DNA of 64,000 nucleotides from Pavona decussata. Taxonomy: Eukaryota. How positions within the stretch are numbered: the stretch's first letter is position 1; each line of letters opens with the position of its first letter. The position numbers and the translations under genes were made by a program. The stretch lies in assembly GCA_977016875.1 (NCBI GenBank), contig CDRNST010000040.1, positions 930,001 through 994,000 of the forward strand. Direction: 5' to 3'. A model generated the notes under the pieces. It saw nothing but the letters and a program-made list of their open reading frames with translations. It searched no databases and was not told where the DNA came from. Of the stretch, positions 9,625 to 61,677 are shown one piece after another.

Positions 9625-12600
9625 GTAAGTACGAAAATCATCCATAAGCCATATAATCTCTTCTTAAATTTCTTTCAGTTATTGAAGCTACAGAAGCAAA
9701 ATAAGTTGCGACAAATTGTGTTATCTGAATACAGACAGATCAGATCAGTTTTAGGCTATCTTTTTTGTAGCCAACCAGCTATTTCAAATACAACGAAAAT
9801 GCGTATCATTGTTTTGAAAGGAATAATTATGCGATAGCTTTTGTAAAACTTAGAATTTTTGCCTCGCGTAGCAATTGTGTGAAAAACAAGTGTTTGAGTC
9901 TATTAAAGTAAATTGGGTTAGCTTTTGAAGAGAGATAGATACAAATCAGACGATCACTGATTTCGGGCTTAAAAAGGAACGAAATACATGTTTAACTTCT
10001 TGTGATATCTTCTTAATCCTATTCAATGTCACCTCCCCTGATTTATGGCAACTTTGGCAAGTAGTTTTATTCACCATTTAGACTGAGTTACCGCCTTCAA
10101 TCTGATTCAGTTTTTATTAGGACACCTAAAGCTTTCATATACAGAGGGTCTTGTAAAGTAGCCAAAAGAAAAGGTTTTCCGAGTAGTAACATAATGAACA
10201 GCGCACGTGTCTTTTCATTTCCATGTATGGTAACCGTGTAATTTCACGTATACATTCTAAAAATTTAAAGAGAATCTATATTTGTTATTGCGGTTTATTA
10301 AACTCCTCATCACGTTTTGGGTTCAAGATCAAAGGGTTATCTCTCTCCTACTATATTGTACTCTTATTTCGTACTCACAGCTTTATCCTTTCCAACATTG
10401 ATTAATGAACCCTAAAAACTGACTTATCTTATTCAATCCAAAGTTTTTCATTTCATCACCTCACCAGAGAAAAGCCTATCTGAGATAAAGGGAGACACCT
10501 TTGGGACTCATATACAGAGGGTCTAGTAAAGTAGCCAAAGAAAGGCTTTCTGACCAGTGCCTTTATGTATAGCACAACTCGAATCCTATTAATTTCCATG
10601 CTTGGTACTCGTATAATTTCACGTGTATCATATGAAGATTTAACCAAATCTATTTGTTCTTGGGTATGTTAGACTTTAGATCGTTTTTTCTCGTTTATGT
10701 TTTCGTATTGTCAGCTACTTCTCCGCGGTGTTTAAACTAACAATAACTCCTATCTTTTTCTTTCATTTAAACAGTTTAACCGAAGCTGGCGACGGAGGTA
10801 GGTTGTTGATTGTCTTTTCAGTGACTTGTCTTTTTTATTTGTTTGTTTTTTCTGTTTGTTTTGGAAGTAAATCAGTTTTTAATCAGTTCATGTGGACAGA
10901 GCAAATAAGACGCCGTGCGGCAATTAACGAATCCAACCTTGATTTTAAAACGAATGTTTTGTTTTATCAACTGAGCTGATTAAGCCGCTTTAAAAAGATT
11001 CAAAACCTGATGCCTCGAGCGTTACTCCCTTCGTCAGAGCTTAATTTTGAAAGGAAAAACGTTAAAAAATTTAGCCGAGTAGATGAAGAAACGCGTATGG
11101 CTAGTTTGCACGAAAAACGCGTGGCAACCAATTGATTGAAAACGGATTTAAATACTAAACTTTCGAATGTTTTACGAGACGGATCCTAGGTATGAAAACA
11201 GGAATAAATGCAAATCTAAGATCTTACTCTGTTGAATTCGCTTGTATCATTCATTCCCTGAGAATGGCGTCATGACGTCGCCGAAACGTCGGAACATTAT
11301 ATCGTTAGTTTTTACTTGCCTGTGAAAAAAGAAAGAAAGAAAGAAAAACTATTTTGGTCAGGGAAAGGATCGGAGTTTGGGAAACCCGGCTTCCGTCGAC
11401 TTGTGGAGACTTGATATTTGACAGAGAAATGTTTACCGATTCATGTTTTGGTGCACGGATTTAGAGATCATTTCTGTCTGTTGTTAACCTAAACTTTTCA
11501 TTTATTCAATAGCCATGTGCAAGATGAAGACTGTGGACAACAAATGCTGCGTCTTTCCTTTCGTCTACAGAGGAACAACTTATAATGCATGCGCCTCGGT
11601 CAGGGCTAGTAAACTCTGGTGCAGTCTCTCGCCAAGCTATGACGAGGATAAACAATATGGATACTGTAGAGGTACCTATACAGTAAAGTAAGGGGTAGTT
11701 GACTCTAGGGAAACCTTCAAAGGTTTGTTGTTTAAGGATGAGCAAATCCAGTAAATACTTATCGTGGAGTTTTCTGCACTAAAAAGCCTATTTCCGTATT
11801 TTGGACGCGCGCGAAATGGGGCGAGTTTCTTTCGCGCTCTCGTCCCAATTACCGCGAGGTCAAACAGCGAAGAAAAACACAAACGGAAATGCTTGCTTTG
11901 CAGGCTAGTCGATACTAAAGTAATCGATGCCTCAATTGTGGGTAAATAGTCGATACTTCCAAATGAGTATCGTTTTTTTTTTTTTTTGCGTAGCTTGTGT
12001 ACTTGAAGCATAGTTCGTGGTTAGAGGTAATTCGTATTCCTTTATCCTTCCAGACGAACTATATCACGGTAGCTCGCCTTGACAGACGAATTGCCGTAAA
12101 TAATTCGTATGGACGGATAATCCGTCTGAAAGCCCGTATTTAAACACAGACAAATTATCAGACGAAGTACCGTTCTTTGTCCAAGTTCGTCGCAGACGGA
12201 TGATCCGTCTCTAGTATTTATACTAGACAGATGATTCGTCTTGACGAATGATCCATCCCTAGTATAAATCGAGCCAAGGATTAAACCAATCAGGTAAAAG
12301 TTGAAGGAATCAAACAAACAAACAAACAAACAAACAAACACTGAAAGGTGATCATCATCAACAATATTGAGTCAGCCCTACAACGATGACTGTTTTATCT
12401 TGACAAACGTTAAAATCACGAACATATCATTGACCAGCAAAATCGATTAAACTTTTAGACGATGACTTGCAATTGGATGAAAGAGAGGAGTCTGCTCTGA
12501 AGTTTCAGAATGGTGTATGCACCTTCACTGTTGTATATGGGATTTTGCACGGAGATATAGAGGATATGACACGGCGGTGCGAAGATATGAAGTTTACTTT

Positions 12601-15600
12601 CGAGTTGTAAAAATAATGTTTTAGTGCGTAGCCAGTGGGGAAAATACTGTTTTTAAAAAAAATGAAGTTCATATCTTTAAGCCACCGTGGTATTTTCTTT
12701 TTATTATTTAAGTAAATCTAGCTCTCGCCATTCTTCACTGACTGTTTGCATAAACAACCGTGGAACAGCGGGAAATGACGTCATCGATATCCTCACCAGT
12801 GAGGATATGGAAAATACGCCACTCGAGTCGCGGATGTAGTTTAATTCGTATGCGAGAAGTGTATTTTCCAGTAAAACACTCCTGTCTTAATTAATTAATT
12901 GTTTTGCGGGAACTGGCTTAGAAATGATATCTTTGTCCTACAGGAAACGATCCCCGTTAAATATACCAGTAACTTTCTCAGGAAATACAGTATGCTTTGA
13001 GCTCTAGGCGACTGTAACAGCCGCTTGTTTGTTCCCTGGTAGGAATGGAAGGTAAGCTTAGTGGGGATGATCAGACTTGGGTCTACGCTAACGGACGTTA
13101 CCTTGGAAACGATAATGGCAGATGGAATGTCCCTAACAGGTANNNNNNNNNNNNNNNNNNNNNNNNNNNNNNNNNNNNNNNNNNNNNNNNNNNNNNNNNN
13201 NNNNNNNNNNNNNNNNNNNNNNNNNNNNNNNNNNNNNNNNNNNNNNNNNNNNNNNNNNNNNNNNNNNNNNNNNNNNNNNNNNNNNNNNNNNNNNNNNNNN
13301 NNNNNNNNNNNNNAGTAAATTCATTTGTACGGTCGAAATAGGAGAGATTACTGGTATAGAATCAGGGTTTGCCATCATAATGTTTTGGAGAGAGAGGAAA
13401 AGGAACAAGCCCACATCCAGGAGAAACCGAGATCATTTTCCATGTGTTCTGTCAGAAAGTCGCCAAGTTCCATTAGCCTGGGGAACTTAAGAAATGACAA
13501 CGCCACAAAACAAAAGGCTTAATGAGCAACAACTATTGCTCCACACATGCGTTTTAAATTTTGGGACATTTCTTTGCCATACTCTGCAAAACAACAACTT
13601 GAAATGACCATATTCAAAGTATTGTGGAGAACGTGAACACATGAAGCCGAATTTCTCATTCTCTTTCTTTACTTGAACGCCACTCCTACCAATTTGGTTC
13701 CTGGGTAGTTCGCCGTTCCTGTAGAAGATGAATCGTTGAAATAACCGCGAAGTAGCACAAGTGAAATAAAGTTATATTTTCAAGAGACGTTTTCGTTAAC
13801 CTTGCCGTCGCCGCTGCTTACGTTTCCTATTTTGTGCACACTAAGTCTTACAAGTCGTATAACAAGGCAAATTGAATAAAGTGTTTGGGAATATTTGGAT
13901 ACAAGCATGATGCAAGCATGACTTTCAAAATTGCTTAATTCAAAATTACTTCTCCTAGAAGATGTATCGGCCTTGTCTTTTCCACAACGTATAATAATAT
14001 ATTAATAATACATCATCATAAAGAAGACAACACGCACGATTTTCAACAATTTAGAGCGACACGGCTGCAAGAAACCTCCATTCGTTGCCAATCATTTTTG
14101 AAATATTTTGTCTTCTTAAAAAAACAAACAAACAAACAAACAAACAAGGAAAAAGACAAACAAAACATACAAACTGACTAAGGAGAACCCAAGCAAACCC
14201 AGGCAGAGGATATTATCTGACAGAGATATTTCCATTCAATTTAATTTATTATATAGGGCCTCTATGGATAGCAGTTTTTATCTTGTACAAAAACTGAAGG
14301 AGTTACCCTATTGAAATACAGGTTTCTTATAGATGCGGTAAAAATGCATGCAGGCTGCCACTAAGAGGAGATGGGAGGGTCATTATAAATTGATGTGAGT
14401 TATATGTTGGCGAAAAGATAAAGAAAATCAACACGAACAGGGAAAGGCTGACTTGAATATCAGACAACCGACTCTTTTGGTTGAGCGACTCGATTGCGCA
14501 AGGTTTAGTTTCATGGATATTTTGAGGACAGTAAAATAACTTGCAGTAGTTGCAATATCAAATTTTGAAAACTGCACACGCAAAGCGTGTGCAGATCAAG
14601 ATTCTCTATGCTTTCAGCGGAATAAATAATTGAAGAGTATAACAGATCTGTCTATCATATTTTTCATATTTATTTTAACAGCTTCTACTTCCCAGCCGAT
14701 CTTCAAAGTGTTGCAGTGTACGTGAAAAACAAAGGCGGACTAGCAGGTTTTATCGCGTCGTTCGGGAATGGCATAGTTACGGATGGCACATGGAAATGTA
14801 CAACTCACGGCGTGCGGAACTGGCAAACAGCCGGCTTTGACGATAGCAACTGGCCAGCGGCTGTAGTGCACAGCGAAAACAGTGGCAACGTTAGAGTCAA
14901 CGGAATTGCATCCAATGCAAAGTGGATTGGGCCAAGTCAGAGGAACGCTAATGCAATTTTTTGTAGACGGCGAATGACTCTTTTTGGAGAAACGCCGACC
15001 GTCGGCGGAAGTGAGTGATGTTTTTGCTAACAAGTCGAGTTAAGTTATATAGGGGAGATGGTAATTTTGCGGGTTCGTGTAATACCAGTGGCGTGTGACA
15101 CAAAATAAAGGCGAGTTTTCACTAGGACGTAAGCATAAGCAGAAGCAGAAGCTCAAACGTCGCTTAAGCAAGTGAGAACACCTGCGGCATAAGCATAAGC
15201 ACAAGAAGAACGAACGTGTTCATTCTTCTTGTGCGTATGCTTATGGTTATGTCATGTTATATGCAAGTCGCCGTTTTCACCAGCGAGAGAACAGAATGGA
15301 GGGACGACATAAGCACAAGCAGAAGCACAAGGCAGTCAACCGTTTCGTCCGCCATATTGCTTAACACTGAGGGGAGCTGGTGTCGAGAATTCCGTGAAGA
15401 AATGCTTTTATGCGCGTGCATCTGTCGTTATGCTTATATACAGCTGTAGCTAGTGTTCTCACTTGCTTATGCTTAAGCTTATACTTATGTCCTAGTGAAA
15501 ACCAGCGTTAAACGTGAATGGATAAATGATCATCATGTTACCTTTTGGTGAAACACTATTTTTTTATGAGAGTTTTCTCCCGTACACAACACAGGTTGTG

Positions 15601-18600
15601 ACAGACCTCTTGGTCTACAAAGCGGTTGGGTGGAAAACAATCAGATGACAGCATCCTCTGTGTGGGATGGAAAACACGCCGCCTGGAGGGGAAGGCTTCA
15701 TATGCCAAAACAGGGCAGCTATCGAGGGGCATGGTCAGCAAAGTACAATAACCCTAACCAGTGGATTCAGGTCTGAAAACGCGACATGTTAAGAAAATGT
15801 TATCATTTCAACTATTTTTATAATTCTGGATGACGTTAGATAATAAACTAAGAGAAGTCCAGTTTTCTTTTCATGGAATACCGAACGAAAAGCCCTCCCG
15901 CTAAAAAGTCACTGCCTACACAAACCAGCCACTCTTTCATCTCCCTTGGTTATATCGCTTTCCTATTCGGCTATGCTCTCTTAAGACCCATAGTTTCAAA
16001 GTTTGCTTTGATGAGCCAGCAAGCGAAACACCTAGTTTCTATTTTCCGCTGAACAAGTTTTACTTTACAACTAATTCGGAAAATGACAGGCAATGCGAGC
16101 GAGCAAGTCATAAATCAAGTTCTTGATTTCTTCTGTAAATTGTTTATAGACTAGCTACGTACATTTTTGTAACACCCCAGCATAGAAACTGCAGTGCTAG
16201 CAGTTGAACAGAGTGGTTGATAAATATTATTGAGTACCAGAAGTAAAGAGTCTCTCATTAGATTTGGTAAATCACTTTGCATTGTATATCATATGCATAC
16301 TGTGGAATCCTACAAATGAATTAAAAAACAGCGCTAGCAGCAACTCGCTCGTTATTTACTGACTTCCCAGATCTCATTTTACTCTTTAGATCTCATTTCA
16401 CCGTCCGATGAAAATTAACGCCCTTGCTACTCAAGGACGAGCTGACTTCAACCAGTGGGTCACTAGCTATACCTTGAGCTACAGTGAAGATGGCACAAAA
16501 TACTCTGTGTACAGTGTTGGCGGACATCAAAAGGTCGGTGAAGGGACATACTGAATGTAAGATGATTAAGTTAGGTCTTGTTTAAGTCTTCGTCAATGGT
16601 AGGCCGCCTCATAAGCTTACTCAATAGGCTGACAGACTACAGATTCGAGGGAAGGAATAATACTACGGAGATTTTAGTAACTGTATTTAAAAGTAACCCA
16701 TTGCTTCTAGAAAAGAGGCATGAGATATAGTATTTGGTCAACAAGGGTCAAAGTTTGAACTTCAAAAGAATTGCAATAGCCAAACAACAGTCTATGAAGA
16801 GTACTTGGATTCTCGTCAAATCTTGGTCACCCTCGCTCTAATTTTCCAAAAGAAAAGTGTCTCAGCAGATTCTTGAAGCCAAATGGTTGTTTTTGTTCCT
16901 ACAAACCTAGCCTTGTAGCAGACAGCCAATCAGAGTAGTTGGTTTATTTATAAATTGTTGTGTTTCTTGTATGTTACTGGCTAGCTGACTGGCTAGAATG
17001 GTAAACGAATTAACTTCCCTAATTAACCTACTAGGTGTTCAGTGCAAACAGCGACAGGAACACAGTCGTTAAACACAGCATTGTACCCAACATAGAGGCT
17101 CGCTTTGTTCGGCTTCACCCAAAGACCTGGCGAGCAGGTATTTCTATGAGGATGGAACTTTATGGATGTTTGAAGGGTAAGTAAGCTCATTTTTTAGTTA
17201 ATTGTAATAACGTAAAGTACAATTTCAAAAAAGTGGGGAAGGAAGTCGTCGATGCTTTAGCTCTGGTCCCCTAACAGCGGTGCCATGTTGCAGCAGGAAA
17301 GCTTAGCTGAGGTATATTACACTTGCACCTCAATTAACCCCTTAAGACCAGCATAAAGCAACTAGGAGTATTAATAACTCCCTTTAAATGGGATGGTTAT
17401 CCATAGTAGGGTTATAACTACGGAGAACATTTGTTTCGCTGATATCCATAATGCATGTAGGTGGAAAGATACATATTGGCAGGAAACGATGCAGGGACCA
17501 GCCACCCTGGAATTCTTCTCTATTTCGACCAAAGGAAGAGGGCGTCAACTTATCCTCACGTGATTACTGTAACGGCTAATGGTGAAATATAAAAACTGCC
17601 ATAATTGCAGCATTAACAATAATACAATTGATCTATAAAAGGTCTAAAGCCCTGTTTGTGCAGATTTGATTCAATTTCAATTTGTGCTTCTCAAGTTTCC
17701 CTATCTCCTCAATCGAGACATTAGAATTAATTCATTCACACGTAAATCTGTTCCAGTTTGCAAGGTGGATGTTGGTATTCTAATGGATGAGTCTGGCAGT
17801 GTAAGCAAAGATGACTTTGAGCGACAAAAGAGCTTTGTGAAGGCCCTTGCTGGTCATTTCCAATTTGGTCCCGATGGTGCTCAATTTGGAGTGATCACGT
17901 TTAGTTCAGGCGCTCAGCTAGATATCACCCTCAATAGATATGGAGACACTGCCTCCTTTGGAGAAGGCGTGAATCGCATTAGACATGCAGGTATTGCTTA
18001 TTTTTGTCACCATTCCAGACAATTTTGACATAACCAGACGCCTATCCTGGTAATATACAGGAACTGAGCATTTCGAAGAGCAAGAAAATCTGGAAAAAGC
18101 AGGAACAGGAACCAAGACAGAATACTTTGATCGAGACAATAAAAAACGAATGACATATTGAAATATTAAACTGAATAAAAGCGTGCAATGCAATGTCATC
18201 AGCATCAAAAACGAGAGGGACGAGAGCTTCTATGAATATCTTAAGCCCCAATGTCAATGTCCATATTCTCCATATACTTCTTATGGTACTAGTTGAAAGA
18301 ATTTGTTTGAACATCTACACATCATTTGCTTTATTTGTATGGCCTGGCGAGTGTATGCTTGAAGAAGTAGTGAAATTATAGGCGAAATTCAGTAGACGCT
18401 AAGACGTTTTCCATTCAGCCAAAATGTTGGTTCAACCCGTTGAATGCAAATGCTACGATCTTTGGAGGTACTCCACTTTTTCCGTTCCAAGCGTTTGATG
18501 CTGAAATTACTGTTTCATTTACACAAAATTTCCATTTCTATGTTGCTATCCTCTTGCGCCCGACGTGCGTTTTTTGCTGTACCAATGAAGTTGAAAGTTT

Positions 18601-27600: not shown

Positions 27601-30600
27601 TTTTCTGCTTCCTCAAGAAATAGGTAAGTTTTAAGCTTTCACTGAACCGCAGGTCAAATCCTTCCCAGAAAGCTGTTGGGTCTTATTGCTCATGGATGAT
27701 AACTTTTAAAAAGGGAAAGGTAAAATATAGTTCTCGAAGACGAGTGTTCAGTGCCAATATGTAGAAATTATTCCAGATGTTTCGGGCTTAGCCCTTCATC
27801 AGTGGAAAAAGATTTACGTTAAAAAGCTGGCTTGCGCTATCAAGTCAGATTTAAAGTTGTAACGTGCGCGCACGATGTGCGCGTGACGACCTAAAGATAT
27901 CGGAAGTCGGAGTTCATTCCGCGCGGCTGACTGGTGCCTATTCTGAAAATAAGGCGCATCCCCTGACGCTTTCGTTGCTTGTTTCCGTCGCAGAGCATAA
28001 TTCCACGGACTTTTGCGTCCTGGATAGTGTGGCCATTTGTATTAAAATGCTCTGCAACGGGAAAGCCCGGCAGGTTCTTCTCAATGCTGCGTAGGTGTTC
28101 ACCGAAGCGTTGCCCTAGCGTGCGGCCAGTTTCGCCGATGTAAATAGCAGGGCAACGGGTGCAAGAGATACCATACACTAAGCCGGTTGTTCGACAGTTG
28201 AAAGCTTCTTTGATGACAAACGAGCTTTTGGGACCCTGCAGCGTGGTGTCAGGAGAAATATGGTCACAGGTACGGCAGCGTGCGTGCGTGCATGGAGAAG
28301 TTCCCACATGAGGATCAGGTTGGCTGTTAGCGGTTGTATGCACTAAAATGTCGCGAATGTTACGATAACGGCGATAGGCAACCAGCGGCGGCTGAGGAAA
28401 TATTTCACTAGGGTCACCAGATAAAATGCTGAAATTGCGCAGCAGGATTCTCTTGATTCTTTCGTTTAAAGGGTGGTAGGTAAGAACCAAGGGAATTCTG
28501 CTTGGCTCTCTACTTGCGGAGTCTTGATGGTGGATGACCTCAGTACGGTTGACCCGCTGGATCGTGTCAAGATCACGCTGTAGAGAGGCGGCACAATACC
28601 CTCTTTGAACGAAAAAAGTGATCATCTCCTTGCCCCTCTCCAGAAAATCAGAGTCGTCAGAACACAGACGCCGAAGTCGTAAAAGTTGACTGCGGGGGAG
28701 ACCTTCTTTGCAGTGCCGAGGATGTGAAGATTGATGATGAAGGTAGCTGTGTGTGTCAGTGACCTTGTAGTGTACGGAAGTGCTGATGTGATCACTGGTA
28801 ATGCGTAAAGTCAGGAAAGAGAGTTCAGTGTCAGAAATTGTGTGCGTAAATTGAAGAGCTGGATGAAAGTTTGATACGAAGCTGATGTAATTCTCAAGTT
28901 CCAAGCGACTACAGCATGCAACCCCGAGGACGTCATCGATGTACCGCTTGTGGAGTTGAGGTACAAAACCAGTGTATTGGCTAGCGATTTGTTCCTCAAT
29001 ATATCCCACGAAGAGGCACGCATAGTTAGGGCCCATCTTGCTGCCCATGGCGACTCCTCCTATTTGCTTGTAAAAATCGCCATTGAAAGTGAAGGCATTG
29101 AGGGTCAGCACAAGTTCTGCAAGACGGGTTAGGGTAGAAGTAGGTGGCTCAAGAACGGAACGCTTGTCAAGGAAGTAGGCTAAAGCTTCAAGCCCGCTGT
29201 TGTTCGGGATTACAGTATACAGAGATTTGATGTCCATGCTGTATAGGAAGCGTTCGCCGGTGATGTTGTCATCAAAGCGAAAATCATTAAAGATATTGAG
29301 CGCGTGGTTGGTATCCTTTATGTAGGTGTTGAGGTTGCGGACGATGGGACACATGATCCGATCTAAGTACGCGGCAATGTTCTCAGTTGGACAGCTGCAC
29401 GCAGAAACAATTGGTCTCCCAGGGTTGCCTGTTTTATGAATCTTTGGAAGCAGATAGAATTTTGAGGTTTTTGGTGAAGGCATAATTAAATTCTTAGCCG
29501 ATGGTGGAAGTTCGTTAGCAGCGATCATAGCGTTGACCGCCGATTTAACCGTGAGCTGATTCTCTTTGATGGGATCGTGATCAATACGTTCATAAAATCT
29601 CTCATCGGACAGTTGACGGTTGGCCTCAGCGATGTACAAAGGGCGCGACCAGACGACAACAGCACCACCTTTATCAGCTGGTTTGATGACAATGTCACTG
29701 CGTGCTGATAGTTGAAGTAATTCTGCTCTCTCAGTGGGTGATAAGTTATTTTGCTGTGATCTTGCCTTAAAATTAACAGCATTTACGGCACGGCGGCAAC
29801 GATCAATGTAATGATCCACAGCTGAAAATTTGCCATCTGGAGGAGTCCAAGTAGAATCCTTGGGGTTAAACTTAGCGAAAGGGTCGTCGATGTCAGAAGT
29901 TGGCTGAGAGTCGCTGTCATCGTTCCTGTGAAAATGGGCCTTCAAACGAATGCGGCGATAGAGATTTTCGCAGTCGGCCTTGGCCTGATATTCGTCAATG
30001 CATTTCTTAACAGGGACGAAACTCAGTCCTTTACTGAGAACCGATTTCTCAGCATCAGTCAGCGGCATGTCAGGTGGTATAGTAACGACGAGTTTGCTGG
30101 GGCGACCATCGGCGTCGGAAGGATTGTTGCCACTACCGCCAGCACGACTGTTAGTGTCGGTAGGATTATTATCACGTTCTTCTTGGCGCTTTGCGTCCCT
30201 TAAAGAAGCCATTTAACTATCCTTGACAGTTTTGAGGCGCATATAATATCTAGAATTGAGGTCATGGATGTAGCGTCGAATGCGATGAAAATAATCCTCA
30301 GAGCAAGCCCTTTGTAACTGTTCGTAGTTTTGGGTAATACCGCTGGAAGCTGAATCACGTTTAATCGTCATGCAGTGGATGGTAGACTGCATGATTTGTC
30401 TAGAGCACGCACCAGTTATAGACTTAACGTTTCGTACGTACCGGTTGGAAAGAGAAGATGGATGGAATTTAACCAGGAATCCAACAGGAACCAATCTGCG
30501 GCGTAAACAACGGCCAATGAAGTTGATGTGGCTAGTAAATCTGGTCTTGGTGAATGTACACATGGCCAGGGAATCGGCATAGTTGCAAATGTCTGCAGGT

Positions 30601-51600: not shown

Positions 51601-54600
51601 ACATATCAGGGATATTAAAGTTTTTTAATTTCTTTGGGAAATAAGGCTTTGAATGGCCGACATCAAATCCAGGTCTTGTGATTACGCCGTCGTGTCTCGA
51701 AGTTAGCACGAGCTCAATTGGGGGTGGTTCGTCCGACATGCCAACATGATTTAATGGCAACATATTCCGCCGTAAACCAGTGGTAGATCTATATCCTAGA
51801 AATCATTGCATTCCAAGAAGGCGAACAGTATGAAGTATTCTAGGTGACCGGTAATCTAACCCGTTCATTGGCATACGTCGTAGAAACTTCTGAGGCTTCA
51901 CTGGGATATCACTAGGAATGACAGTCATTTCTTAGTGATAACTAGTTCATAGGCAGTTCAACAGGCTAAGAAAACATTCCGATTACGTTTTAAGGACTCT
52001 ATTAAGAGAAAGAACAACTGGCTTTTGATAGCACAGACTGTAAAATTTCAGGTTAAAAAGGGCAACAGAAAAAATATAAAAGAAAATTAACGAAGAAGAA
52101 AAACTGAGAGTGCATTTCTTTACAGACGAAATTTTTCTTTTCATCTATAAAATTAATCAGTTTATTGTTGGATTATGACACTTTGTGAAACTTATAGGCG
52201 TGTGGTGTCATGCAATTTTTGTGATAAATAATTCTGGATGGTAAACGTTTCAAATCGCCATGCACAAATACAGCCAAGTACTAGCATACGTTTTTAAAAT
52301 ACTGACTTAGGCAACCAATATTGTATTAAGGAAACATCTTTATTACATCACACTACTTGCTTCACTAGTAGATCGTGCGAGTGACGTAATTCCAGCTTAC
52401 TGTGGTACAGTCGAACGTGTATGAAGTGTCACCCTCGGGAAAATGGCTAAGTTACGTGGAACGCTTCATACAGGTTGACGCTTAATACAGGTTGCACAGA
52501 ATACGCGTCGAACACACTTACTTTGTTAAGAAACGTCAGCGATGAAATGGTATGACAAAAGAAAACATGATATAGAAACGGACTAACAAAACATTAATGG
52601 GAAAGAAACAAATCGTTGGAACTTAGTGAAGGATGACCACGACCGCTTAAGAGAAGTGACTGTGTTTAATGGTCTCTGTCTGTTGATGTGTTTAGATTAC
52701 CGTGCAACAGAACAGTTGTGACGGCTTACCTCAGTCTTGCCCGGCGGGGCCTGTAACCGAGACTCGTACCTCTATGTGCACGTGTCAATCCGTGTCTTGC
52801 TCGTGGGGAGCGTGGGGAAATTGGTCTGGTAAATGTGGCACGGTCAACAGAACACGCCACATTGTGGAGAACCAGACAACGGTTCAAGCTGAAAACTGTG
52901 ATGCAGTTCCAAAGAAATGCATGCAACAGCCGGAAACTGAGAACAACAAACTTCCAGATTGTAAGTGTTTCCGGAAATGCTTGTTAGGGATTCCATTATG
53001 CGTGCTGCATCGACCTTTATTGCTTTTTTCCATTGTTTGATTTTAAAGGGGCACTGTCTCGTCGATTTTGCTGGATTTTGGTCGAAACGGCTCAAATATA
53101 AATATATATAATCACTTTTAGTGGTTTTCGACAATACACATAGACAACTTGCTATTAAAAAAAATTGGCAAGCCGAAGATAATTAATACTAGTTTCTGTG
53201 CATTAGTAGGGTTATTGCTAAATCAACTGAATCATTATTTTGACCATTTCATCAATTCAAATATGTTTTTTGGCCAATCAAAGTGAGACAAAAAATAGGC
53301 CCCTTTAATGTTTGGCAACTTTTCGACCTCCTTTGATAGGTTTGTAATGGCTTTGATCTCAACGGGCCGATCAACGTGCAAATCATTTGCAAGGCGAAGT
53401 CGATTTCTAATAGCCTGTTCCAGGCTCCTAGAGAGAAGCGCGAAGGAGAGGGCGAGGGGACGAAAACGAGGGGGGCTGGGGAGAGAAAAAGAGGGAAAGA
53501 AGAGGAGCCTGTAATCATTCTCTTAAATACCTCATGCCGGTATACCAGCTCCCGGTATACCCTCTGATTGGTCAGTTTTGACAGTTCAGACATCACTCAA
53601 AAGATATCGCGAAAGAATCTGAAAGAGTCAAAATGGCGAGTGTGTCACACGCGCGTGGTTTTGATGAGACTGAGTTTAATACAGTTTTAGAGAATTGTCT
53701 TCGAGATTTTCCGCAAGTTAAAGTACTCAGGAAGGAGCAAAAAGCTTGCCTTCTCAATCTAGCTCGTGGGAAAGACGTTTTCGCCATTCTACCCACCGGT
53801 TTCGGGAAGAGCTTGATATTTCAACTGTTTCCTCGAGTCTCGAGTGCTTTGTGCTCAAGTGAAGTCAAGCCGTTGTCAACCATTATAGTGGTTTTCTCCG
53901 TTGGTTTCAGTGATAAGAGATCAGGTCGAGCAGTTAAAACAACTAGGGTTCTCGGCCGCAGCAATAGGAATTGGCGACGAATGTATAACAAATGCTATAG
54001 CTCTCGAAAGCAAGAGACAACAATGATAAGCTTTGAAAGACGAGGATCTGTTAGACACTCATATCCGTGATAAACAAACATCCTGCGGCAGTTTCAATCT
54101 TCCCGAAGTGATATGCAATAGCATAAGCATGAATTCACAAGTAAAGAACTCCACGGATCCTGTATCTTCACAGATAAAATTTATTTAGCGCTACCTGAAA
54201 TCTTGCAGTTAATCCTAGCCGCTAAACTTTAACAAATGCCACAGAGCTAGCATACACAATGGCATATCAAAATCTAATCCTAACGGCTCAGAATGATCAG
54301 TAAGAAACTCTCCATTCAGTTTATATGAGAATTCCCCCTCACGATTAAGATGAATAACATTAAGCAGAGCCGTCGCATCACGTTTTGATCAAAAGGGAAG
54401 AAGCTCTTATACAAAAGGAAAATCGCTTAAAGACATGCTTGCATTGTAAAAGCTTTTATCAAAACAACGCACACACAGTGGGAGTCGTGCAGGTCTGTCA
54501 ACCGCATTTTAACATATTTAAACGTGCCATAAATTCTGGCCAGGATCCTCGCACAAATGAGGCAGCTGACGCTGGAAAGCTCTTCGTTTCTCAATAGCTT

Positions 54601-60633: not shown

Positions 60634-61677
60634 ATGAATTCTAGCGAGACTCACCAGAGCCAAAGTCCACAATCGTTGACCGAATGTGACTTGTTTCTTT
60701 TTCTGGGCGGAAGGCTTGATCCTACTAACACCAGAGCTTACGCGGCGCTCGTGTGCATAGCGATCTTCAGCCTTGTCACCTTTCCGATTGTCACTGTTTT
60801 GAACGCACTTGTCATAGCGGCTATCAGCACAAAACCGCCGCTGAAAACCATGTCTAACATTGCACTCGGCTGTTTGGCAACCACCGATGGGTTAACGGGA
60901 ATGATTGGTCAACCTCTGTTTGCTGTGTGGATATTAACAACTCTACAAGGAGAGGGGTATGCTTATTGCTCGTTGCAAAATTTATCTAGAAACTCACTCA
61001 GGGTATTGATTGGCGCATCTTTTTTCCATCTGGTCTTGTTGAATCTGGAGCGGTACATAGCAATAAAACACTCTTTAGAATACAACACTATGGTGACCAA
61101 ATTTCGCATACTTATTTCTTCCTCTATCGCCTGGATAACAATGTCACTCCTTACTATATCTTTAACCATCGTAGACAATACCGTTTACGTAACGGTATCT
61201 AATATTATCTTGTGTGTATGTATGGCCGTCACTGTCTTCTGTCAAGTCGTTCTTGGTTGCGAGACTCGCCGCCACGAAAGAGAAATCGCTGCTCATTATG
61301 CCTCTGTGGGAGCAAGACAAAAATTCTTAAAAGAGAAAAAGGCTTTAAAAGTAACAACTACTGTACTATTAATGTTGGTCTTGACATATTCGCCTATATT
61401 GATCGTTCGATTACTAATAATAAAATCAGTTATCGTCTCAGTAAGCACAGCTTACATTGCTTTCTTCATCGCAACGTTTGTGTTAATTCTCAATTCGTTT
61501 ATTAACCCGGTAATTTACTGTGTCAGAATGAGACAATTTCGTGTAGCGTTTATGGAAATTGCTGTCAGGAAGCGTAGCACAGAAACTGAGAAAATTAAAT
61601 CTGTGACAGCAATTGAAGAAGGACGGAAAACAGGAGAACAACAACACAACACAAAACCGGGAACCTGTTTCGCTTGA
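60634..61677 (+). CDS. Intronless class A (rhodopsin-family) GPCR, 347 aa
   Basis: Seven hydrophobic segments, TM1 N, TM2 LA..D, TM3 LERY, TM4 W, TM6 TYSP, TM7 NSFINPVIY, helix 8 FR.AF. Confidence 0.93.
   Translation: MNSSETHQSQSPQSLTECDLFLFLGGRLDPTNTRAYAALVCIAIFSLVTFPIVTVLNALVIAAISTKPPLKTMSNIALGCLATTDGLTGMIGQPLFAVWILTTLQGEGYAYCSLQNLSRNSLRVLIGASFFHLVLLNLERYIAIKHSLEYNTMVTKFRILISSSIAWITMSLLTISLTIVDNTVYVTVSNIILCVCMAVTVFCQVVLGCETRRHEREIAAHYASVGARQKFLKEKKALKVTTTVLLMLVLTYSPILIVRLLIIKSVIVSVSTAYIAFFIATFVLILNSFINPVIYCVRMRQFRVAFMEIAVRKRSTETEKIKSVTAIEEGRKTGEQQHNTKPGTCFA

Follow-up and report, generated by a model that had tools for sequence, protein, structure and literature searches.

A probable CBM67-like carbohydrate-binding module encoded by two exons of a mosaic protein gene in the coral Pavona decussata

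The region analyzed is a stretch of 64,000 nucleotides (nt) from Pavona decussata (contig CDRNST010000040.1, positions 930,001–994,000, forward strand). This whole stretch is referred to here as the window, and all coordinates are positions in it. The subject of this report is exons 4 and 5 of a gene for a secreted mosaic protein (Table 1). Together these two exons are 426 nt, or 142 codons. Exon 4 begins in phase 1 and is bordered by an acceptor AG at 13041–42 and a donor GT at 13140–41; exon 5 has its acceptor AG at 14680–81 and its donor GT at 15011–12. The exons join in frame at AG|C, which encodes Ser, and constitute a phase 1-1 module. Exon 5 contains a GGxAG loop (14734–14748), a VTDGTWKC strand, an FDDSNWPAA motif, a closing KWI strand and an FCRRR strand. 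The original prediction, made from the sequence alone, quoted motifs from both exons as typical of the carbohydrate-binding module family CBM67, and a reading of the sequence finds all of them at the exon positions claimed. We consider it probable that exons 4 and 5 together encode a single, complete carbohydrate-binding module with a beta-jelly-roll fold and about 142 residues, a homologue of CBM67 and of the mushroom lectin POL, that was shuffled as a phase 1-1 cassette into the secreted mosaic. For this module we infer binding of Ca2+ and of a sugar.

The assembly has a run of Ns at positions 13143–13313. It starts 3 nt past the exon 4 donor and lies entirely within the intron. Exon 4 aligns without gaps to residues 1–30 of a single-exon paralog, L003 (E = 1e-7), and the alignment resumes with exon 5 at L003 residue 33. 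In the spliced Nematostella ortholog P0125 (XP_048582331.1), exon 4 corresponds to residues 53–81 and exon 5 to residues 85–191; the three P0125 residues between the two matches correspond to P-N-S in the window. The proteins from Oculina patagonica (P0274), Montipora foliosa (P0275) and Actinia tenebrosa (P0273) and from a Logan assembly (P0276) are likewise uninterrupted at this point. Contigs from two related species have the exon 4 match approximately 280–440 nt 5' of exon 5. As the junction is collinear, without an insertion or deletion, with L003 and with the spliced orthologs, no coding sequence is lost or hidden in the gap.

Phase-1 boundaries are also present at the signal-peptide-like exon, at the exon for the fibronectin type II domain (FN2) and at the discoidin exon 15595–15770. 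Shared phase-1 boundaries typically mark extracellular modules that have been shuffled. The proposal that the domain is split by an intron and lies as a phase 1-1 module between phase-1 exons of a real animal gene thus agrees with the exon map. For the upstream exon, the start at 10715 is placed by an AG alone, and 10715–10800 does not include the initiator Met. The end of this exon aligns with the end of the signal peptide of the Oculina ortholog P0274. Exon 3 has 72–75% identity to the FN2 region of P0274 and P0275, and the orthologs are matched by the Pfam fn2 model.

Table 1. Coordinates of exons and of the domain-splitting intron in the mosaic protein gene of the window
Feature	Position	Strand	Content and boundaries
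Upstream exon (context)	10715..10800	+	Signal-peptide-like hydrophobic stretch; ends ..LTEAGDG; phase-1 donor
Exon 3 (context)	11513..11671	+	Fibronectin type II domain; phase 1-1; splice sites read
Exon 4	13043..13139	+	First 32 residues of the domain, strands 1–3; Asp-Asp dyad at 13066–13071; Y-x-N-G turn
Intron inside the domain	13140..14681	+	Phase 2; contains the assembly gap 13143–13313
Exon 5	14682..15010	+	Other 110 residues of the domain; ends in phase 1
Exon 6 (context)	15595..15770	+	Start of F5/8 type C (discoidin) domain; splice sites read; PF00754, E = 6e-4 on the open reading frame; kept in orthologs
Discoidin exon (context)	16390..16536	+	Bounds are those of the conserved coding block, unrefined
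Last discoidin exon (context)	17035..17181	+	Bounds are those of the conserved coding block, unrefined

The orthologs P0125, P0274 and P0275 display the same order of domains: a signal peptide, fn2, 140 unannotated residues, an F5/8 type C domain and three vWA domains, with a further C-terminal region beyond the vWA domains. The order FN2, this domain, discoidin and vWA is common to stony corals and sea anemones. The gene encodes a secreted mosaic protein that is conserved across Hexacorallia. All orthologs are named 'uncharacterized' by NCBI, and a Pfam search of the Nematostella, Actinia, Oculina and Montipora orthologs gives no match in these 140 residues. The coral skeletal protein 'coadhesin' was considered as an identity for the gene without gaining support, as the orthologs are all 'uncharacterized' and the coadhesin paper has no matching architecture.

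A search of PDB sequences with exon 5 alone gives POL (6T0Q, 6T1D and 6KBJ, E = 1.3e-4) and the Streptomyces avermitilis rhamnosidase SaRha78A (3W5M, E = 1.7e-4), and nothing else notable. Exon 4 alone, which at 31 residues is too short for this purpose, has no PDB match with phmmer; it also has no Pfam match. A profile made from the window, its orthologs and its paralogs (A2) matches both POL domains with E = 1.8e-14 over profile positions 8–122, SaRha78A residues 245–305 with E = 4.7e-9, and the Dictyoglomus rhamnosidase DtRha (6i60) with E = 7e-4. When the profile is made from the spliced orthologs alone (A5), the E values are 3e-14 for POL and 8.7e-5 for SaRha78A, and the alignment with POL covers both the exon-4-derived and the exon-5-derived parts. 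Other searches recovered mostly unnamed sequences. A word search with exon 5 found orthologous exon fragments only, unnamed and with 68–96% identity, and a feature-based search of the ESM Atlas gave unnamed clusters, with a lectin/PF08531 cluster appearing only at a score of 0.84. When a copy of the domain from a bacterial RTX protein was the query, the matches were limited to four distant loci, all bacterial and one of them a GH78 enzyme of Actinopolymorpha. Taken with the predicted folds described below, the profile matches support homology of the exon 4–5 domain to the CBM67/mushroom-lectin jelly roll.

The A5 profile also matches a sialic-acid 9-O-acetylesterase (PDB 7KMM, residues 307–360, E = 3.7e-4) in the half that contains the dyad strand. 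Ancillary domains of CE20 acetylesterases give Z of about 5 against the model of the Nematostella ortholog.

The fold was examined in models of the paralog L003 and of the Nematostella ortholog. The L003 model has a predicted local distance difference test score (pLDDT) of 93.9. With Foldseek, 3W5M/3W5N and the POL entries are on top with a probability of 1.0, followed by a sharp drop, and C2 domains have a probability of no more than 0.23. Structural alignment of this model with VIA-align gives Z = 12.7 to SaRha78A (3w5m) residues 172–297, with a root mean square deviation of 1.7 A over 108 residues. This SaRha78A segment sits between the N-terminal immunoglobulin (Ig) domain and Bac_rhamnosid_N, as judged from the domain layout of the analogous enzyme at locus L026. 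The C-domain of POL has a Z of 12.6 and the GH78 enzymes 2okx and 6i60 have values of 10.8 and 8.9; these are followed by CBM60/36 at about 7.5 and the next structure at 4.7. The Nematostella model (P0125, residues 52–192) has a pLDDT of 91.9, with Z = 11.3–12.3 and 26–28% identity to POL and Z = 11.4 to SaRha78A; for this model the best unrelated fold has a Z of about 5. A fold search of the ESM Atlas gives full-length matches with template modeling (TM) scores of 0.80–0.84, including a cnidarian 'lectin family' cluster and clusters from several bacterial phyla. Folds of the galactose-binding-domain type (GH2/GH35 enzymes, discoidin, C2) were rejected, with Z of 4.7 or less compared to 11–13 for CBM67 and POL. 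The sequence profiles, with POL at 3e-14, and the predicted fold of paralog and ortholog both bear out the CBM67-like identity given in the original prediction, and the best profile and structure matches are CBM67 and POL and not an unrelated animal family.

The ESM Atlas also contains a Nucleocytoviricota (giant-virus) cluster of proteins of about 555 residues that match this fold along all 132 residues with a TM score of 0.82.

The order of strands is a property that the original prediction does not contain. The coral domain opens with the dyad strand and closes with the K-W-I strand and a strand that bears a Cys. In POL a W-I-W strand precedes each dyad strand (positions 27–40 and 199–206), and the chain ends at position 353, soon after the W-x-x-A of the second domain. 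Sequential structural aligners leave the last 24 well-modeled residues (model positions 109–132) unmatched. Because of this difference in order and these unaligned residues, the strand order is probably circularly permuted relative to POL, or cut in a different register from a tandem array. When a permuted and a native profile are compared on the Actinopolymorpha GH78 enzyme, the core motif alone is aligned, in either order.

In addition to the copy in the window, no fewer than 21 others are present on the genome contigs, mostly in tandem arrays. They are found at C64:449–513 kb, C213:1.36–1.44 Mb, C124:0.96–1.08 Mb, C120:2.10–2.11 Mb, C44 and C164 (loci L002–L012 and L017–L025). Copies on C64 and C213 are single-exon open reading frames (ORFs), and in some of these a signal peptide directly precedes the domain. 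Three copies have in-frame stops. The position that is D-D in the window and D-N in the stand-alone copies L003–L010 is C-N-G or C-K-G in the copies L018–L023 on C124, and these C124 copies cluster in the tree with named PAN/Apple proteins. Judged from these residues, L018–L023 may have lost binding of Ca2+ and sugar.

An exhaustive profile search gives 2,859 cluster representatives at E <= 1e-3. Named cnidarian matches are from Nematostella, Desmophyllum, Oculina, Porites and Stylophora. Bacterial matches are from metagenome-assembled genomes (MAGs) of Chlamydiota and of Clostridia and from the RTX protein. A euglenid transcriptome encodes eight copies together with a C-type lectin. The annelid Owenia fusiformis protein P0017 (CAH1799242.1) has three copies with PAN domains at residues 686–1382, a pairing that the coral array also has. 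The P0017 model also fuses a folliculin domain, which is probably a merger of gene models.

A quick tree of 92 domains, from which rows with fewer than 30 bits or fewer than 95 profile positions were excluded and in which every third unnamed short protein was sampled, has all cnidarian rows on one side of a branch with a Shimodaira-Hasegawa-like approximate likelihood ratio (SH-aLRT) support of 94. It is unrooted and weakly resolved, has 140 columns, and most of its rows carry no taxon. The orthogroup of the window lies nested within coral paralogs that are small and secreted. Because of this nesting, the most likely origin of the module in this gene, as read from the tree, is a resident coral gene of the cnidarian family from which it was shuffled in. 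Horizontal acquisition had been suggested, and at this gene there is no sign of it: the guanine plus cytosine (GC) content of the gene region is ordinary, the domain order is kept in sea anemones and the module nests in the cnidarian family. Recent transfer or contamination is ruled out by the ordinary GC content, the introns, and orthologs with a domain order that is anthozoan-wide.

A much older event is a separate matter. The module may have entered animals from bacteria by a horizontal transfer that dates to the base of Cnidaria or to an earlier time, which we regard as doubtful, although it is the best of the alternatives considered. In favor of transfer at the base of the family are the patchy distribution and the many bacterial copies: a 2024 review gives CBM67-like lectins in Archaea, Bacteria, Oomycota and Fungi only (PMC11186620), and many of the best library matches are bacterial tandem arrays (Chlamydiota and Clostridia MAGs, the RTX protein). 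The placement of the cnidarian rows on one side of the tree is in keeping with it, but that tree has the limits given above. The Owenia gene, on a chromosome-scale contig, has the domain beside PAN as in corals, which fits an old animal ancestry equally well, and the introns, GC content and anthozoan-wide domain synteny exclude anything recent. Recruitment from within the cnidarian family is the probable origin of the copy in the window.

In POL-type domains two adjacent Asp residues bind a Ca2+ that holds the sugar, and a loop Pro or Val also contributes (PMC11512411). The comparison of CBM67 Ca2+ ligands made here covers the Asp dyad and this loop residue. The D-D at 13066–13071 of the window is aligned to a D-D in each of the two POL domains, and the surrounding stretch is a near residue-for-residue match. 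Among nine orthologous sequences the stretch is readable in eight, including the two related-species loci, and the dyad is invariant in all eight. Four elements do not vary within the orthogroup in either corals or sea anemones: the dyad, the loop GG, the T-D-x-x-W-K strand and F-D-D. The N-x-G-G-x-A-G loop is kept in the window. Ratios of nonsynonymous to synonymous substitution rates (dN/dS) are 0.14–0.15 for exon 4 and 0.12 for exon 5; both exons are under purifying selection. By analogy with CBM67 and POL, the Asp-Asp dyad of exon 4 would hold a Ca2+ and the GGxAG loop of exon 5 may contribute to the site. Two neighboring hydroxyls of a sugar would complete the coordination of the Ca2+, and in this way the matrix protein would be anchored to a glycan, which may be the coral's own, in its matrix or mucus, or lie on the surface of microbes or algae. 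Specificity for rhamnose and the non-self sensing proposed in the original prediction are hypotheses.

Several points weigh against a sugar-binding module of the CBM67 type. The match of exon 5 to Pfam PF08531 (Bac_rhamnosid_N) has 13.4 bits, E = 0.069, over 28 residues, and is below the gathering threshold of 25 bits; this model matches 7 of 26 members of the domain family, with a best E of 0.018. In the fold evidence the window's own domain is represented by relatives that are 33–37% (L003) and 46% (Nematostella ortholog) identical to it. The loop Pro of POL is a Leu in the window and P, A, T, S or N among the orthologs. The dyad is also not present in all paralogs, so that binding is not universal in the family. 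The stand-alone paralogs have D-N at this position, which corresponds to D179-N180 of SaRha78A provided that the superposition has no gap from residue 172 onward, and the PAN-fused paralogs of the C124 array have lost the dyad.

The exons could then encode a CBM67-like fold that does not bind sugar and that serves as a protein-protein or spacer module between the FN2 and discoidin domains. The PAN/Apple-fused paralogs with C-N-G or C-K-G imply that the fold survives without the site, and the POL loop Pro is not kept. FN2 and vWA domains are typically protein binders, and as neighbors of the module they favor a role of this kind. This alternative is nevertheless unlikely. The residues that are invariant from corals to sea anemones are those that align to the POL sugar site, and the dN/dS values also count against it. 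The reading of the two exons as a putative Ca2+-dependent carbohydrate-binding module is the one retained.

It is very improbable that the exons are an artefact, whether an open frame that arose by chance, a pseudo-exon, or bacterial sequence contaminating the assembly near the gap: the gap does lie between the two exons and neither has a significant Pfam match, but such a reading is refuted by canonical splice sites, a junction that is exact relative to five annotated proteins, orthologous exons with 68–96% identity in other assemblies, dN/dS of 0.12–0.15, and neighboring exons that encode animal-type domains of the same gene.

The 2024 review cited above gives no InterPro family for the CBM67-like lectins, and it lists galactose (Gal), N-acetylgalactosamine (GalNAc), N-acetylglucosamine (GlcNAc) and L-rhamnose (L-Rha) as ligands of POL (PMC11186620). 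A search of the full-text literature for CBM67 in coral and for rhamnosidase N-terminal-domain lectins in cnidarians found no animal report. That review has no animal entry, whereas here the CBM67-like domain is part of an anthozoan matrix protein, where it is conserved and under selection. With this identification, residues that had no annotation in the model animal Nematostella (LOC5506315) and in reef corals become a candidate Ca2+-dependent glycan site, and research on coral-microbe and coral-symbiont recognition gains one candidate lectin family. A bolder proposal is that the permuted CBM67-like domains, with at least 22 copies, represent an unrecognized old animal lectin family, and that the copy in the mosaic binds microbial or algal sugars such as L-rhamnose in a Ca2+-dependent manner. 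It is speculative, and we would not expect it to hold as stated. If it were true, the module would be a built-in arm with which the anthozoan matrix or mucus catches or sorts bacteria or dinoflagellate symbionts.

Other features were seen in the window and in related contigs. An ORF of 773 residues on the minus strand (27891–30212), located among the vWA exons, has the look of a retroelement polyprotein, with reverse-transcriptase-like motifs and a GIY-YIG-like C-terminus as judged by eye from the ORF list; this suggests a Penelope-like element. In one related species the intron 5' of exon 4 contains a retroelement with RVT_1 and Exo_endo_phos genes (L016:2167–5052, minus strand). A single-exon ORF of 347 residues at 60634–61677 (plus strand) resembles a seven-helix receptor. 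The ORF fragment at 53633–54070 (plus strand) has a helicase motif-I-like sequence, ..PTGFGKS.., and may be a remnant of a RecQ/DEAD-type gene. Runs of X in the ORF list mark two more assembly gaps, at approximately 36.57–36.73 kb and 56.63–56.76 kb, the first of which adjoins a thrombospondin-repeat-like exon.

Among known systems, domain D of SaRha78A is a CBM67 that is Ca2+-dependent and non-catalytic (PMC4690510). The coral module shares with it the jelly roll (Z = 11.4–12.7 to residues 171/172–297), the W-K strand and the block G-W-x-x-P-D-F-D-D-S-x-W-P-A-A. It differs in that it is not located on a GH78 enzyme but in an animal matrix mosaic, and in that it contains two Cys residues. Its last two strands, approximately 24 residues, do not align sequentially with domain D, and their order is probably permuted.

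The best sequence match to the coral module is POL from Pleurotus ostreatus (6T0Q, 6T1D, 6KBJ, 6KC2, 6LI7), which is grouped here with Shictin of shiitake. The D-D dyad, the Y-x-N-G turn, the N-x-G-G-x-A-G loop and the V-T-D-x-x-W-K strand are identical, and Shictin likewise has D-D as its dyad. POL is a non-enzymatic lectin, and the coral module is likewise without an enzyme. However, POL is a small fungal protein of two tandem domains, whereas the coral protein of approximately 1,700–1,900 residues has a single module. The tandem repeat by which POL-type lectins are recognized (PMC11186620) is absent, with one copy present between FN2 and discoidin.

The next-best folds are CBM36 and CBM60 (2XFD, 2XHH), with much weaker Z values of 7.4–7.7 and without sequence similarity. 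According to the titles of their PDB entries these are Ca2+-dependent carbohydrate-binding modules that are circular permutants of each other, and they provide a precedent for permutation only. The array on C124, in which PAN/Apple is combined with a CBM67-like domain, and the named cnidarian 'Apple domain-containing' proteins P0038, P0221 and P0232 belong to the same domain family as the copy in the window and have the same strand order. They are small secreted fusions, 22–33% identical and without the Asp dyad, whereas the copy in the window keeps the dyad in a large mosaic. The rhamnospondins of Hydractinia combine thrombospondin repeats with a rhamnose-binding lectin domain. Although that lectin is of the SUEL/Gal_Lectin type and is unrelated to the CBM67-like domain, the concept of a secreted cnidarian protein that joins matrix-type repeats to a lectin is alike in the two systems.

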